The translations under genes and the position numbers were made by a program. Below, piece after piece: positions 2,945 to 19,458 of a DNA stretch of 19,458 bases. The DNA is from Lenisia limosa (lineage: Eukaryota > Protista > Breviatea), in assembly GCA_001655205.1 (NCBI GenBank), contig LPNZ01006843.1, positions 17,460 through 36,917 on the forward strand, read 5' to 3'. The stretch's first letter is position 1. Every line of letters starts with the position of its first letter. The notes under the pieces are model-generated. The model had not been told where the DNA came from. It was given only the letters and a program-made list of their open reading frames with translations, and made no database searches.

Positions 2945-3113
2945 CAAAGTCAAAAGAACAACGGGTGAAGTCAACTCTAGCTACCATCAAAGTCAAAAGA
3001 ACAACATGTGAAGTCAACTCTAGCTACCATCAAAGTCAAAAGAACAACATGTGAAGTCAACTCAAGCTACCATCAAAGTCAAAAGAACAATATGTGAAGT
3101 CAACTCTAGCTAC
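2945..3113. repeat. Tandem minisatellite, 43-bp unit x about 3.9 (CAAAGTCAAAAGAACAACATGTGAAGTCAACTCTAGCTACCAT)
   Basis: Units start at 2945, 2988, 3031 and 3074. They are head-to-tail with no spacers and differ from the consensus by at most 2 substitutions. Confidence 0.97.
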
Positions 3114-3213
3114 AAATTCCATCCCCCCCCCCCAACTTTTGTTTAATCTTTCCTCTTCTTCTTCTTTGTTGTAGATTTAAATTTATAATCCACTATTTAT
3201 CTAGCACCACCTA

Positions 3214-3459: not shown

Positions 3460-5984
3460 ATGGTTGCTAAGCCGAAGCGGATTAGTCCCCATGAATTGAG
3501 AGAATGCAAGAACGACAAGCATTCCCAATGGTTTGTCAATAATTATCATGTTATAAAACACAAAATATGAACATTTTATGAAGTTGTATGGCAGATTTAC
3601 TTCTTCCCTTGAGGTGAGCTCTGACAACTAAGGTGGGGAACTCCAAGCCTTCTTCCTGCAGCCACTGAGTTCTACATCACATCAAGTAGATGCAAGAAGT
3701 GTATCAGGGAAATGGCAAAGCGAAAAGACAGGGTTGGTTCCGTCTTTTCATTTTCCCCTTGTATGACAAATGTCGAGTATAATACAATTGTACTTTTCTT
3801 CTTAACGTGATTTTGGTCTGTTATATTTTTTTCATCAAATAATGTCTTACATTTTAGGGGATAGGAGATATTAACGATGATGGAGTGGTGATTCCTCTGG
3901 AAGAAATTCAAGAGTTCCTTGACGTAGGTATCAAGTCTCTCATTTTCAAGTACATTTGTATTCTATTCTAAATCCGCAGCAAAAGCGAAAGAATCGCCAG
4001 CAAAACTTACGAGCTGCACCGACATCGACTCTCAAAGCTGTGGCGCCGCAGCAACGCCGGTGGGTTGAGTAGTCTATTGAGTGCAAGATTGAGCGTCTTG
4101 GGCATGTTTATTAATACCTTACCATATAAAGGGCTATGTAAAGTATATTATAAATCATCAAACCGTTTTATCATGAGGCTCGCATGTTACGGATTAGTGT
4201 GCGAGTTGCAGGACTGCCTTCTGCGACCCTCCCTCCACCACCGACACCCACCACCACCACTCTCGACCTCCTCAAGCCCCCCACTCAATGTGTCCGATGC
4301 CAGCTTGGTGGCTCTTTGCTCGTCTGTCATGGACCCTGTGCAAGAGCCTACCATCCTAATTGCATTGGTTAGCTCTCCTGGACTTTTGATTCGTTATCTC
4401 ATTTGGTAACATTTGGGCTCAATGTATTTAGATCTCACAGAGCACTCTATTGCTGATTGGATTTGTCACGATTGTCTCAATCCCGAGTCACCACCTTTAG
4501 CAAAAGTTGGCTTTGCTTGGACTTTTTAACATTATATGTTTTTTTTCATTCTTCGCTGTTTTATTCTTGATGCTCCAGCTTGCACCTGAAAAGACCCAAA
4601 AAGGCGTAAAAGAGTTCGAAGACTTTAAAGTAGGGTAACAGTGCAAGAGTGTTTTCACAGCTTGTACTACCTTGTTGGATTATTTGTTACATTTAGGTTA
4701 CCTGGGATCCCGAAAGGAAGCAATACTACTACAAAACCACAGCCCCGACAACTGAGTCGTCTATCCTTGTCCTGAATGTTGATGATGAAGTGGGTCATTT
4801 GAGCAACTCTCACACAGTTTTGAAACCTTGTTTTTTTGACATTTCAGACAGTGACTCGATATGTTCGGCCGAGCCCTGCTACACGTATTCTCAAAAACTC
4901 TGACATTACAAAGCTCCAGGTAGGTACAAAGGAGTGACAAAGTTCTTTATTTTTAAGACGCATGACAAACTCGATCCAATTTGGGGTCACGTTCCTGGCC
5001 CACGCACTGTCATAAAGCCCCCTCCCCCTCCTTCAGTCAAAATGGTAGGCTTCGTCTTCTCAACACGGTGGTGTCGGTTGCAACTTGTAACACCCCTCAG
5101 GCCCCTCAGGCCGCATTTTCATCACCTCTGCCCACGCCCACCGCTACGCCACTCATGCGTGCGGCTTCTGTTGGCGTGTCTCCAAATATTCAGATTCCCT
5201 ATCAGGCCGGTTTGTTAGGATTGTGTGATTCAAAATTGGATTGGCTTACAATGATAAAATATATGTAGTGTGAAATATTTACACATCAAAAAGCTGGCTG
5301 GTTTTGACAGCTGCACTTCATTGCAAAAATCTAATCCATATCAACTTTTTGATTTCATCTGTGCAACACACCTCACACTTTCCAGCTTCCACTTTCCAGT
5401 ACATGAAAAATGCGAACTTTGGTTCTGCTCTTGTCAACCCTGGCAACATCGCACACACTCCATCTCCTGGTATGTTCAGCTGTACTCTTAAACAAAAGAA
5501 AACCATTTTTGTTTTATGGAGATGAGTTGTTATTTTGGATATAAAGGAAACTGAAATGCTCTGTAGGACTATTTCAGCGGAAACGGGGGCGTCCCGCTGG
5601 CAGTAAGAAAATCCTCAGTGGCTCTCCAAGACCTCAGTCTCAGTCGTCACCAAAGCCCAGTAAATACACACCTAATGGTTTGCTTGGTTGTCACGTTCTC
5701 CTTACCTACCCAATGGACTGACATAAAATCTGTGTGAAGAGCTGAAAGAAAGGGTGGGTGTTACTGCTTTCGATATCGGAAGGTGGCCAGGTGGACGGCT
5801 TTGTTTAGAGCCAGAGATAAACTCTCTTCTCATACATATATCTCATCCAAAATTAGGCAGGCCGCGGGGAAGGCCAAGGAAAGACACACGACTGGCTTCT
5901 TATGTTGTCACCCCGAGGTCTTCACCACAGTCTGAACCAATTCAGTCGTCTCAGCAACTTCAGATACCAATCCATAACTTCTAG
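3460..5984 (+). CDS. PHD-finger and AT-hook chromatin protein, multi-exon
   Basis: C4HC3 PHD finger CVRCQLGGSLLVCHGPCARAYHPNCI|DLTEHSIADWICHDC (4289-4475, split by an intron). AT-hooks KRGRP (about 5581) and GRPRGRPRK (about 5857). Pro/Thr-rich linkers. Most exons join in frame at GT-AG sites; the start (3460), exons near 5210-5400 and the stop are less certain. Confidence 0.8.
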
Positions 5985-6267: not shown

Positions 6268-9200
6268 ATGTTGACTTGCCTCGTGGAAGTGGCATCTGAT
6301 CCTTCTAACAGCCTTGTTATCACTCAAGTTAGGCCTCAAAACAATTTTAGCACCAGTAGGCAAGGAGAAGGCTTTCTAGTTACAAGTCATCCCGTTTTCT
6401 TCCTCCACTTGTCGTTTCTTTCAACCTCTTGTGTTTTAATGCTTCAAATAAGTACAAATAAAGCTTTTCTTCAAGCTGAATCGTTCTTATTAACACTTCT
6501 AACCTCTTCCTTTTCTGTCGAATCAGTCTCATTGTTCCAGCTCTCATTTTAACTCTGGTATGTTTGACCTTACTATTCTAGATCATGACTACTCATCTTT
6601 CATGGATCATATTTCAAAGGAGACAGAAATCAGCCTGAACAACCTTGTATGTGACACTATTCTATGTTCATCTTTTGGGAGGGTAGGCCTATTAGTTACT
6701 ATTCCTTGCAGACCGTCACTTGGGGTGGCAACTGTGTTAACAGACATGCATTAGTCCAAGCATTCAACTCCGACACTTCTCCAGTTTTCAGATGCTACGA
6801 CATGAACCATGCTAAGTGTTAGTGGGGTTTTATGAGGGGTGTGAAGCGTTCTTTACTCCTTTGCAAGTGCTCTTTCTGTTTTAGTTTTATTATTACAGTC
6901 ACCTCGTCATCTCTTTGCAAGCAATCCCCTCAGTTTAAAAAAAGGGAACTAAACAGAGAAGAAGAGAGGGAAGAAGAAATTGAGAAGGAAGGGGAAGAAA
7001 TTGAAGAAAAGAATGTACAAGTTGTGGAAGAGAAAGAAAACGAGAAGGTACTAGAGGAGGAGGAGAATGAAAGGGAAGGAGTGGAAGAAGCACAGGAGGA
7101 GAAGAAGGAAGAAATTGTTCAAGAGAAGGAAGAAGAGAAGGAGGAAGAAATGAAAGAAGAGAAGGAGGAAGAAATGAAAGAGAAGGAAGAAGAAATTGAA
7201 GAGAAGGAGGAAGAAGTGGAAGAGAAGGATGAAGAAGTGGAAGAGAAGGAAGAAAAGGAACAAGAAATTGTTGAAGAGAAGGAGGTTGTTGAGGAGGGGG
7301 AAGAGAAAGTGGAGGAAAAAGAGAACGATGAAAATGAGGAGGATGAAGAAGAAATTGAAGCAATCAAAGAAGAATTAGAGACGTTTGTTCAGGATGTTGT
7401 TGTTGAAGTGGTCGTACAGCAGCCAAAGAGCCGTGAAAATGGGGATGTTGCTCAACCAAAAAAGAAGTACTCTAAAAGCAATGGCGAACCCAGACAGCCC
7501 CGCGCTAGTGAAGTTCTGTTGAGCTTTTTGTCTGAGGACAAAGAGACTATCTTCATGAATGTAGGCTACATCACCAATTTTTGAAGGCTGATTTCGCCCA
7601 AGCAAACTTTTAACAAAACTAGGTTTCAAAGAAGGACAGCATCTTCTCTGTTCTTCATGCTTTCTCTTGCAAACGTGAGAAGGGACCTTCGTTTGGTTGA
7701 TTAACTTATTCAGATTTCCCTGGTCAAACTCTTCGCTTCAAATCTGAAACTACCGTCAAGTACCAGGTAAGATCCGACATATTACGTCCAGTTGGCGCCT
7801 TCCACCCCTCCTCCATAACCTTTTCCAGGAGCCCGTCCAGAACCTCAAGAAGACTTCGATCTCCATTTTCAGCGTGTCCAACTTGTCCAACGAGGTTGAC
7901 GAAAAGGCCCTTAGTGCTGACCTTTCAAGCCTTCTCGAGGTTGCCCTGGCTGGTGATGACAGGCTGAAGAAGGTATGTTGCCACTGCGACAATGACTAAT
8001 AAATAATGTGATGCCTATTGTTTTTGGACTAAAGCAGGCCAGTGACTTTTCAGGTTATTGAGGGCTGCATTCCCAAGGTCTTCGACTCTCTAATGACCCA
8101 ATCTGTCCTTCCCGAGATCCTGGTTGGCTCAGAGTATAGTCACTGCAGTTGAAACAGCAACTACACGTTTCTATTCTCCTTACCAGTTTAGATCACTGGC
8201 GAGGGATTTTGCGAGGAAACTCACCATGCTCTTGTTAAATACAACCCCGAGATATTTTCTATCAAGGAGGTGAGCTGATTGCAAAAAGAGGTTTATTATC
8301 AGCCATTTTACGATGATACAGACTAAGTATTCTTGAATTAGTCAATTGTTGATCATTCTAGCAACTTGATACGGTGAAGTACTTCTCAACACAGAACAAA
8401 CCTGATGATCTTGTTTCCAAAATGGTGAAAGCAATCCCGAGAAGAGTTTGGGGGGCGGAGCGGGGGAAGAGTCTTGAATTAAGTTTCTGAGTGTGTACTG
8501 ACTTTTGTAGTTCAACAGAAACCTCTCCGAAATTGCGCTATTCTCACTCAAAAATGATAACCTGCCTTTCATGGCCATGATCATGAACCATGGAGTTGAG
8601 TTCTGTGACCAAGACAAAAAAGTTGGTTGTTTTGCGTGTGCTACATATATTCAACAAATACTATGATAGATAAGTTCAAAAACACTTTGTAGAATAGCTT
8701 TGAATCATTTCCTTTTCAGGCATACGACAACGCAGACGAGTTTTGGAAGTTGCTTCTCAAGCAAGAATCTACCAATTTCCCCAAATACTTTATCTGGAGA
8801 GGGTTCAAGAGAGGCCAAGTTGACCTCCTCTTCTTGGTAGGGATATTTTTTGCGTTTGCAAATTTGAACAACTTTCCTTGCAGTTTTTACTTGTTGTAGA
8901 GTTCATGGTATAACAAGACTAAAGATGAGAGGTTTGGACTGAAGATTGTTGAAAGCTGCACCCCATCCCACCAAGTAAGCTCCCCTTTGTCTTACTCATT
9001 TTGGTCACCACCTCCTTATGCAGTAGATGATGATGCATCTTGCTTGCAAGTACTCGCATACCAACATCGTGAAGTACCTTCTTGAAAAGGCTCAAATTGA
9101 CGTCAACATCAACAACAGCGTTGGAGGGCAGATAACTACTATGATAACTTGTGATTGACTCCCTTCTTGTTCCTTGGGCTGGTATTACCGATCCCGTCTG

Positions 9201-16900: not shown

Positions 16901-17893
16901 GTTCTCAAGCCCGTATTCTGTACAGCGATGTGGAAGGTCGCAGCAACATTGCTTCATCCTTCAATGAGGCTGTCAAGGATGGGCGTCTCTCTGTTGGCTT
17001 GCCTCTCTGCTTAGCATTGACTAATAATATCCTAGGGCCCTGTCGTCATTTCACGTGACCACCACGACGTTTCTGGAACCGACAGCCCGTGGAGAGAGAC
17101 CTCCAACATCCGCGACGGCTCGATGTTCTGCGCTGATATGGCTGTTCAGAACTTCTGTGGTGATGCCATGAGAGGTATGCATGCTCACCCCCCAGATAGC
17201 AAACATTCTGCGGGCTTGATTAACCCTTCAAGGTGCTACGTGGGTTGCCCTGCACAACGGCGGCGGCACCGGTTGGGGTGAGGCCATCAATGGTGGCTTC
17301 GGCCTGGTCCTTGACGGCTCGGACGAGCAGGGTGANNNNNNNNNNNNNNNNNNNNNNNNNNNNNNNNNNNNNNNNNNNNNNNNNNNNNNNNNNNNNNNNN
17401 NNNNNNNNNNNNNNNNNNNNNNNNNNNNNNNNNNNNNNNNNNNNNNNNNNNNNNNNNNNNNNNNNNNNNNNNNNNNNNNNNTGAGCCAAAAATGCTGCAT
17501 TGGGATTGTATGATCTAATAATCCAGAAAATGCTGCATTGGGACGTTCTCAATGGAGTGACCCGCAGAGCCTGGGCCGGCAACGACAACGCCCTTGATGC
17601 TATCACGTGAGCCCCCCCCCCCNNNNNNNNNNNNNNNNNNNNNNNNNNNNNNNNNNNNNNNNNNNNNNNNNNNNNNNNNNNNNNNNNNNNNNNNNNNNNN
17701 NNNNNNNNNNNNNNNNNNNNNNNNNNNNNNNNNNNNNNNNNNNNNNNNNNNNNNNNNNNNNNNNNNNNNNNNNNNNNNNNNNNNNNNNNNNNNNNNNNNN
17801 NNNNNNNNNNNNNNNNNNNNNNNNNNNNNNNNNNNNNNNNNNNNNAAGGCCGACGCTGAGCTTGTTGCCAAGTCACTTGCAAGTGCTACGTGA
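13991..17893 (+). CDS. UROC1: Urocanate hydratase, eukaryotic long (UROC1) type, at least 21 introns
   Basis: Spliced translation matches UROC1 motifs: VPHAPKRTP, NALRYFP...ELKLYGHIYMYRF, MIMNNLDKAVAQFPQELITYG, GQMTAGSFCYIGPQGIVHGT, GLGGMSGAQ, GSDQTSCHNP, FDYGNSF, GFGPFRWVC, VVGSQARIL, SRDHHDVSGTDSPWRETSNI, LHNGGGTGWG, MLHWDVLNG. Stop TGA 17891-93. Two N-gaps hide short parts. Confidence 0.98.
16633..16714 (+). other. Long intronic inverted repeat (hairpin) in urocanase intron 16
   Basis: Arms 16633-16654 and 16693-16714 pair over 22 nt with one G-U and one mismatch; an inner stem TCGATAA/TTATCGA follows. Confidence 0.85.
17336..17481. other. Assembly gap (146 N) inside urocanase
   Basis: N run. 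Confidence 0.99.
17623..17845. other. Assembly gap (223 N) next to a poly-C run inside urocanase
   Basis: N run directly after a C homopolymer. Confidence 0.99.
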
Positions 17894-18369: not shown

Positions 18370-19458
18370 TCAATGTCGGATGGTGACATTGGGTGACGAC
18401 AAGGCTGCAAGATCGGCCTCGTCTTTGCTCGGAAGGGGCCAGATCTCGGCATTAGGTATCAGACCGTCCAGCGTGTACTGCTTGAAGACTTCTCGTTCGA
18501 AGTCCGAGGCTTCGAGTCCACTGGCAAGGAGCCTCTTCCATCTAGGGTGTTAATACTGCTAAATGAAGGAACTGAACTGAACTGAACCAAACTGCATACC
18601 TGAGAATGATATTGAAGTCATCAACACCAATGGCAAAAAGTGTGACTTCCCGAAGGATAGACTCAGGAGCTTCGGTATTTGCTGCGGCAGCCGGGATCAC
18701 CTTGAGAGTCAGTGGGATGATAGTATTAACGATTATTGCATCAATCTATCCAACCTTTTTCCCGCCGATTGCCCAGCGCAACCCGCTGTCGAAATTGAGC
18801 CGACGGTACCCGGGACCATTGAGATTATTGTCGACGATGACGAGGACAAGGCCTTCCAGCTGAGACGCGAAAAGTCCATTGCCGCCCGATACGAAGCAAA
18901 ACGAGTGGACTCCTTCCATGAGGCATACAATGATGCGGTGGACGTGATGATGGTGGAGGCTCCTACTGGTTTGGCCAAACCCCCCATGCTTGGAATGTCC
19001 GTCCTGCCCAACCTGAGCCCTCTCGGCCTCAAGGTCTTCAAGGTGCCTGCCGGCAAGCCCTACGCCGCCGCAAGTGGCAGTGTGGGCGACATCATCCTCA
19101 GAACCCGGACCTTTTTAGGCCTATTCAGCAGGCAGAAGAGGCAACAGACACCAAGGAACGCCAGGGACGAGATCGAACCGATCAGCGCCCAAAGAGCAAT
19201 GGCAAAGTCGTTGCTAGAGTCTCCCCAATTGCCCTCCAGAACAACACACTCACCACTGAGGGGTGGCGAGGATTGGTTCTTAGAGATGATCAAGTGATCA
19301 TGCGCAATGGCGTAGGCTGGGCGTGTTAGGCTTCCAACATATTCCGGCCACCATGGCACCTGATAGAGATCGATACTTGCTGGGGGCGGGCAGATGAGAG
19401 TTGTTCTACGACTCAGTTGTGGCGTTCTTGTTTCCACCCACAGACCCAGTGCCATTCC
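18370..19458 (-). CDS. 3' part of a single-pass (type I-like) membrane protein, unknown family; 5' end outside the window
   Basis: Open frame from the window edge through a hydrophobic helix FAIALWALIGSISSLAFLGVCCLFCLL followed by basic NRPKK|. Downstream exons 18700-18600 (VIPAAAANTEAPESILREVTLFAIGVDDFNIILR) and 18541 onward (WKRLLASGLEASDFEREVFKQ) join at GT-AG sites. The true 3' end is uncertain and may extend toward 17900. Confidence 0.6.
18761..19108 (+). other. Opposite-strand coding segment (116 codons) containing a truncated PDZ-like domain
   Basis: Reads ...KPPMLGMSVLPNLSPLGLKVFKVPAGKPYAAASGSVGDIIL..., matching PDZ spacing LG(I/M)...GxxVxxVxxGxPxAxAxxxVGDxIL. Codon usage is host-like on +. 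No in-frame ATG upstream. Flanked by ACCTTTTT at 18753-60 and 19109-16. Confidence 0.6.

Follow-up and report, generated by a model that had tools for sequence, protein, structure and literature searches.

A block of coding sequence reversed in place within a cadherin-like receptor gene in the Lenisia limosa assembly

Comparison with two paralogues from the same genome indicates that a short block within a large receptor gene of Lenisia limosa is the gene's own juxtamembrane linker, helical stretch and first two-thirds of a PDZ-like domain, reversed in place. The block occupies approximately positions 18757-19100 of the window, by which we mean the whole stretch of 19,458 nt that was analysed (17460-36917 of contig 6843; the end of the window is the end of the contig). 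The preliminary description of this DNA had noticed a switch of coding strand at this point, and in the assembled sequence the switch is borne out: the block codes on the plus strand, and the transmembrane (TM) exon and exons 2 and 3 code on the minus strand. Narrowly, we take it as a real microinversion in the organism, a reading that has in our view an even chance of being correct; both its existence in the organism and any splicing of the gene are what we infer from the sequence. The most serious competing explanation is an error of assembly, and it is weighed below.

The locus is eukaryotic in its signals, with GT..AG introns of 54-90 nt and branch sites of the CTGAC/CTAAC type. The genome assembly is a gapped 49-Mb draft of 11,727 contigs. 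Three runs of N are present in the window, at 2280-2326, 17336-17481 and 17623-17845 (47, 146 and 223 bases), so the contig is a gap-estimated scaffold. The introns of the two paralogues, on contigs C156 (L008) and C9141 (L020), hold similar runs of N. On the minus strand, an open stretch of 116 codons, cut short by the contig end, closes with a hydrophobic helix of 27 residues and NRPKK; the inverted block lies 358 bases from the contig end. The features of the gene, listed from the contig end inwards, are as follows (here and below, a slash outside brackets in a motif marks a junction).

19101-19458, minus strand: TM exon, an open minus frame; the final portion of a large ectodomain exon that the contig end truncates.
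19109-19116, no strand: right copy of the 8-mer; the minus strand reads AAA AAG GT, the codons KKV inside the TM exon.
18757-19100, plus strand: inverted block, coding sequence that belongs to this gene but stands on the wrong strand, as judged by tblastx, Smith-Waterman alignment and codon score.
18980-19099, plus strand: putative first part of the PDZ-like domain, PPMLGMSV ... GLKV ... GKPYAAASGSVGDIIL, with matches in C156 and C9141.
18866-18970, plus strand: predicted helical linker of the cytoplasmic tail, matching the C156 exon at 4425-4562 (z 5.4).
18789-18805, plus frame 0 to plus frame 2: probable site of a frame break, from the DNA alignment with C156.
18747-18788, plus frame 0: juxtamembrane motif (Y)PTFFPPIAQRNP, one frame off the rest of the block.
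18753-18760, no strand: left copy of the 8-mer, lying across the left junction and made up of AGGT of the minus-strand donor and TTTT of the block.
18701-18754, minus strand: intron of 54 nt, with donor GTTGGA at 18754-18749, branch CTGAC at 18712-18708 and acceptor AG at 18702-18701.
18600-18700, minus strand: exon 2, VIPAAAANTEAPESILREVTLFAIGVDDFNIIL(R), likely the second part of the PDZ-like domain, with a paralogue match.
18542-18599, minus strand: intron of 58 nt, GTATGC ... TTAAC ... TAG, read from the sequence.
18370-18541, minus strand: exon 3, coding at 18373-18541, with the stop codon TGA at 18370-18372.

The minus-strand parts of the gene are matched by the paralogues in the orientation in which they stand. 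The TM exon reads, in order, as ectodomain, TM helix (about 19126-19206), the basic stop-transfer sequence NRPKK and then VRVL. Its ectodomain motif matches C156 (E 9e-07) and C9141 (57% over 21 aa), and FCLLNRPKKVRVL aligns with FLLLYKRDKTRVL of C156 (z 2.9) and with KKKPRIL of C9141. For exon 2, GVDDFNIIL aligns with GVDDVAIIL of C156 (z 4.6), and the codon score is +16 bits. The donor of the 58-nt intron, CTCAG/GTATGC, is found in the same form at the homologous point in C156, and exon 3 matches C156 at 2028-2141 (E 4.4e-5; z 21).

The block itself gives the opposite picture with respect to strand. Its plus frame (18761-19108) is open over 116 codons and scores +28 bits in a codon-usage measure trained on the 1291-codon exon of C156, against -2 and -26 bits for the two open minus frames. 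The codon-position composition of the block on plus (G1 0.43, G2 0.15, C3 0.42) agrees with that of the minus-strand exons 2 and 3. In Smith-Waterman alignments with paralogue exons (2000 shuffles), the plus reading reached z values of 5.4, 7.4 and 10.1, and the minus readings of the block gave no match (z <1.5). A Ser-rich reading in minus frame 0 through the block, tried as a low-complexity tail like that of C156, was rejected, having no similarity and scoring -26 bits. The earlier statement that the plus frame halts right after GDIIL was found to be wrong, since the frame is open as far as 19297 (238 codons); past about 19100, however, it merely mirrors the TM exon in antisense. The full 238-codon frame (18584-19297) covers the block together with antisense of exon 2 and of the TM exon, and real coding sequence is limited to its middle 344 nt.

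What the block is becomes apparent from the layout of the paralogues. When the last 1.4 kb of the window was compared with C156 by tblastx, the TM exon and exons 2 and 3 paired minus to minus (summed E 1e-15), and the block paired plus to minus, in colinear order. The Smith-Waterman alignments were made one exon at a time, an initial shuffle test of colinear chains at word size 3 having lacked sensitivity; all searches reported here were likewise run on single exons. The C156 gene lies entirely on one strand and consists of a 1291-codon exon (Big_9 and cadherin-like domains), a TM helix, a long tail and several small exons, which end with clear counterparts of exons 2 and 3 of the window. The C9141 paralogue is closer to the window than C156, and there too everything is on one strand, in the order TM helix with KKKPRILHPTFPPPMF; PADLGL..GLK; GHPYALSSGQVGDLILK; VNGTRVKAPEDINTALQ. 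Its matches to the block show 65% and 47% identity, all on the strand of the C9141 gene. Both paralogues thus carry a homologue of the block between the TM exon and the equivalent of exon 2, with its order preserved and its strand that of the gene. Because these homologues are co-oriented and colinear in both paralogues, the block is to be read as the gene's own sequence, in its own place, backwards. An inverted exon had been one of two explanations put forward in the preliminary description, and it is this one that the paralogues bear out.

The correspondence extends to the individual parts of the block. The juxtamembrane motif matches HPTFLPPIFKGLP of C156 (z 6.0) and HPTFPPPM of C9141, and in a MAFFT alignment it falls seamlessly right after the minus-strand KKVRVL. 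In the stretch that follows, an AlphaFold2 (AF2) model of the block places a helix at residues 26-69, with low confidence. The PDZ-like part aligns with two C156 exons, at 3076-3150 (PPVFGLSV...GLKV; z 7.4) and at 2707-2817 (GKPYDKAGGHIGDVI; z 10.1). The stretch of tail that is unbroken in the window (18866-19099) is split by at least two introns in C156 (2707-4622) and by at least one in C9141, so the window copy has fewer tail introns.

The two ends of the block can be placed within narrow limits. We infer a right breakpoint at 19098-19100 and a left breakpoint at 18747-18757, with 18757 preferred. On the right, the TM exon had been thought to end at a splice donor at 19111. This is not borne out: the minus reading runs past that point as KKVRVL, resembling DKTRVL in C156 and KPRIL in C9141, and the exon most likely extends to 19099-19101, R(V/I)L being present in both paralogues. 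There, RVL or RIL leads into HPTF(L/P)PP(I/M). The window has its version of this motif, (Y)PTFFPPI, at the opposite end of the block, on plus at 18747-18770. On the left, the minus strand reads AAG/GTTGGA at 18757-18749. The 54-nt intron that had been proposed here (18701-18754) is supported by C9141, which has the same AAG/GTTGGA donor, in phase 0, after the homologous GD(L/I)ILK. The exon after this conserved donor begins with V both in C9141 and in the window (VIPAAAAN), and the 46 nt beyond the donor (18701-18746) are intron-like, with 35% G+C; as a caveat, 18701-18745 is also open as minus-strand coding sequence, at +8 bits.

Un-inverting 18757-19100 produces GDIILK/GTTGGA. This sets GDIIL(K) beside the donor AAG/GTTGGA, in the way that C9141 has GDLILK/GTTGGA. 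The junctions are thus reciprocal within 0-12 nt, the slack between the two: KKVRVL is taken up again by (Y)PTFFPPI or FPPI at the block's far end, and GDIIL(K) meets AAG/GTTGGA at the other. The ten bases 18747-18756 give YPT(F) when read on plus and the donor when read on minus, and for this reason the left breakpoint is stated as 18747-18757. Within this range 18757 is preferred because the donor match is harder to obtain by chance than the YPT match (6/10 bases): the donor agrees with that of C9141 at 9/11 bases, in the right phase and position, with an intron-like 35% G+C and a CTGAC branch.

Two other placements were considered and rejected. The exact flip given in the preliminary description, 18761-19108, would join NRPKKV/PPI and GDIILRTRKK/GT; it makes the RVL and PTF matches coincidences and leaves four residues more than C9141 before the donor. 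A model with breakpoints at 18747 and 19098, in which the 54 nt are coding, gives a gap-free RVL/YPTFFPPI, but the GTTGGA donor, the composition and the CTGAC branch then become coincidences. All that was retained of this model is 18747, as the lower limit for the left breakpoint.

The earlier remark that a simple inversion leaves the frame off by a base is right as arithmetic. Between the TM codon boundary (19111) and the donor (18755) lie 356 nt, which is 2 mod 3, and hence no pure inversion restores the frame. The frame break probably lies inside the block, near 18791-18796, and not at a junction. The motif FPPIAQRNP falls in plus frame 0, the remainder of the block in frame 2, and aligning the DNA with C156 leaves the window with five additional bases near 18791-18796. 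The break may be a mutation or a sequence error.

The identification of the domain as PDZ, made in the preliminary description from the plus reading, is weakly supported, through the paralogues; the window's own pieces give no Pfam hit, a search with every window piece of the receptor gene having returned 0 families. The C156 exon homologous to the end of the block, searched as a single exon, matches PDZ_2 with E 0.0058, at 17.3 bits where the cut-off is 27, and PDZ_6 with E 0.074. A profile of the GxPY...GDxIL region of the three paralogues listed eight PDB chains at a threshold of E up to 10, and all eight (8/8) are PDZ domains matched at the right position, at weak E values of 0.08-1.2. Among language-model features, PDZ clusters are indicated at 0.81-0.83, a lead only, and C9141 continues with the classic GDLILK/VNG. 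The apparent resemblance to known PDZ domains (PF00595, PF13180, PF17820) lies in the loop-strand motif PPMLGMSV, in GLKV and in G-K-P-Y...G-x-V-G-D-I-I-L, arranged as in alpha-A to beta-E, for which PDZ domains have the pattern G-x-P-A...G-x-x-x-G-D-x-I-L-x-V-N-G. Unlike in those families, no match reaches the Pfam threshold, and the AF2 model of the block alone (4-row alignment) has a pLDDT of 52 and a pTM of 0.23. We therefore call the domain PDZ-like, its membership of the PDZ family being weakly supported from sequence.

Small in-place inversions with two breaks, or microinversions, are seen when related genomes are compared. The present case resembles them in that the same content is reversed at a homologous position, the breakpoints are reciprocal and long inverted repeats are not needed; it differs in lying inside coding exons, in being deduced from paralogues and not orthologues, and in being seen in a draft assembly. 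Two breaks about 345-350 bp apart would have reversed the gene's own exon sequence in place. If so, full-length mRNA could not be made from this gene copy as it stands, and this copy of the cadherin-like receptor family would be either a recent pseudogene or allele, or a tail-shortened form. In the tail-shortened form, the backward block would be skipped as a 410-nt intron, from 19111 to 18700, in frame; the join that had been described there (NRPKK/VIPAAAAN) is right arithmetically.

Alternatively, the assembler may have flipped a short piece near the contig end, with the frame break a base-calling or consensus error and the true gene intact. Draft scaffolds with orientation errors offer a close likeness: close to a contig end of a fragmented assembly with gaps, a short piece is turned against its two neighbours. 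The 11,727-contig draft with its gaps, the runs of N in the window and the contig end 358 nt away all count against a real inversion. The exons are all open apart from the one frame break, as would be expected of an intact gene with a local assembly error, and two separate defects, of orientation and of frame, fall in one piece of 350 nt. Also on this side, the left breakpoint is resolved no better than 10 nt. Against an assembly error stand the junctions themselves. Unlike typical misoriented scaffold pieces, the joins show no gap characters and no duplicated overlaps: at neither junction did we find runs of N, repeats of ≥9 nt or the duplicated k-mer overlaps that a flipped unitig would leave, and the flip is seamless within 0-12 nt. 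The clean joins and the reciprocity of the junctions suggest a real inversion. We give an assembly error a little over one chance in three, so that the weight between the two explanations leans mildly towards a real inversion.

A variant of the real inversion gives a role to the sequence at the breakpoints. The HPTF codons are nearly complementary to the family's unusual donor AAG/GTTGGA, with 7/11 bases in C9141 (6141-6151 against 8229-8239 of L020). In an ancestor, the block may have lain between the arms of an inverted repeat of 11 nt; 12 nt would then have been lost at the right junction. That the inversion is real and was favoured by this near-complementarity, perhaps with a skipped-block receptor or a strain polymorphism as its outcome, seems to us unlikely, at roughly one chance in ten.

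It was also suggested that the block could be a switchable or strain-variable exon cassette; a related functional reading is an opposite-strand exon that is transcribed separately and trans-spliced. In Drosophila mod(mdg4), opposite-strand exons are joined by trans-splicing, and the present locus is similar in having the coding sequence of one protein on both strands. The reading frame of the block is still open, and the in-frame skip from 19111 to 18700 exists. However, and unlike at mod(mdg4), splice signals are missing from the block's own strand (on plus, there is no AG acceptor before it and no GT donor after it), and the block carries a frame break. Its boundaries are without inverted repeats, a search for inverted pairs with arms near 18747-18760 and 19098-19116 having found none, and both paralogues use the ordinary co-oriented layout. 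Nothing we found supports a cassette, and we regard a functional arrangement of either type as highly improbable.

The other explanation of the preliminary description was that a gene fragment from elsewhere had been captured, had entered a splice donor with duplication of an 8-bp target site, and was spliced out neutrally. Transposons are known to capture gene fragments with target-site duplications, as in Pack-MULE elements or in hAT-type insertions with 8-bp duplications, and here, too, an 8-bp direct repeat flanks a wrong-way, coding-looking piece. The 8-mer ACCTTTTT does occur at both ends, as had been described (18753-18760 and 19109-19116), and removal of the segment with one copy of the 8-mer leaves the in-frame join. 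A common 8-mer in both junction windows is, however, found by chance in about 2.5% of composition-matched shuffles, which is mildly unusual for a pattern picked after the fact. Both copies are explained as by-products: the right one consists of TM-exon codons, inside the conserved coding KKVRVL, and the left one of the donor AGGT with TTTT of the block, so that neither appears to mark a target-site duplication. Of the duplicated splice donors that had been seen here, the one at 18755/18754 has paralogue support; the candidate at 19110 has none, and it reads GTCCGG, with a C at the +3 base that never occurs in ten donors of the family. In contrast to Pack-MULE or hAT-type captures, the segment has no terminal inverted repeats or poly-A. 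The search for a donor locus that had been proposed found no second copy of the block in the 49-Mb assembly, as DNA or as protein, and the supposed insert is native to the family, both paralogues carrying a homologue of it at exactly that position. Capture with a target-site duplication is thus not supported and is close to refuted.

The least probable reading is that the plus strand has a gene of its own, nested or convergent, or that an antisense frame happens to be open over an ordinary minus exon. It has in its favour the open 238-codon plus frame at 18584-19297 and is strongly disfavoured, since outside 18757-19100 this frame is antisense of paralogue-supported exons, there is no ATG before 18947 and no splice signal, and the minus frames of the block have neither homology nor good codon scores.

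Wider searches added little. A phmmer search with the cytoplasmic segment (the plus reading of 18584-19108) against 1.84 billion representative proteins gave 0 hits, although at this database size a 40-residue match at 50% identity would not pass, and the result is barely informative on distant kin. A metagenome scan with the block returned 505 pattern hits, of which 0 were confirmed. The Rfam scan of the whole window found nothing, the scan for promoters and terminators used bacterial consensus sequences and is uninformative for a eukaryotic locus, and the literature search yielded nothing specific. Elsewhere in the window, a 250-codon Glu/Lys-rich open frame on the plus strand (6832-7584) runs over purine-rich tandem repeats of 21/42/63 nt at 7099-7267, with strong GC and AT skew; in Pfam, whose scan covered this ORF (6832-7581) and the receptor-gene pieces, it gave only a weak sub-threshold match to ELP3_N. 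At 2945-3113 there is a 43-nt tandem repeat with 3.9 copies at 96% identity.

The gene belongs to a lineage-specific family of very large single-pass receptors, seen on contigs C156, C9141, C7209, C8411 and C3953. Members have Big_9/cadherin-like repeats with recurring LSG(D/S/N)(F/W)G motifs, and at least three of them have R(V/I)L-HPTF after the TM helix, then a PDZ-like tail that small introns interrupt.

For annotation, the arrangement matters because a gene caller would truncate the receptor or invent a 410-nt intron, and the 238-codon plus frame could be annotated as a gene that does not exist. The locus also offers a concrete and cheap test case for assembly quality. The arrangement is of a known kind, and our data do not indicate a new mechanism. 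If the inversion is real, it would be a clean microinversion of a single coding exon in a young member of a lineage-specific receptor family; if it is an artefact, the intact gene would encode ectodomain, TM helix, linker and PDZ-like tail. Receptors of this family have a Big_9/cadherin-like ectodomain, one TM helix and a PDZ-like tail.
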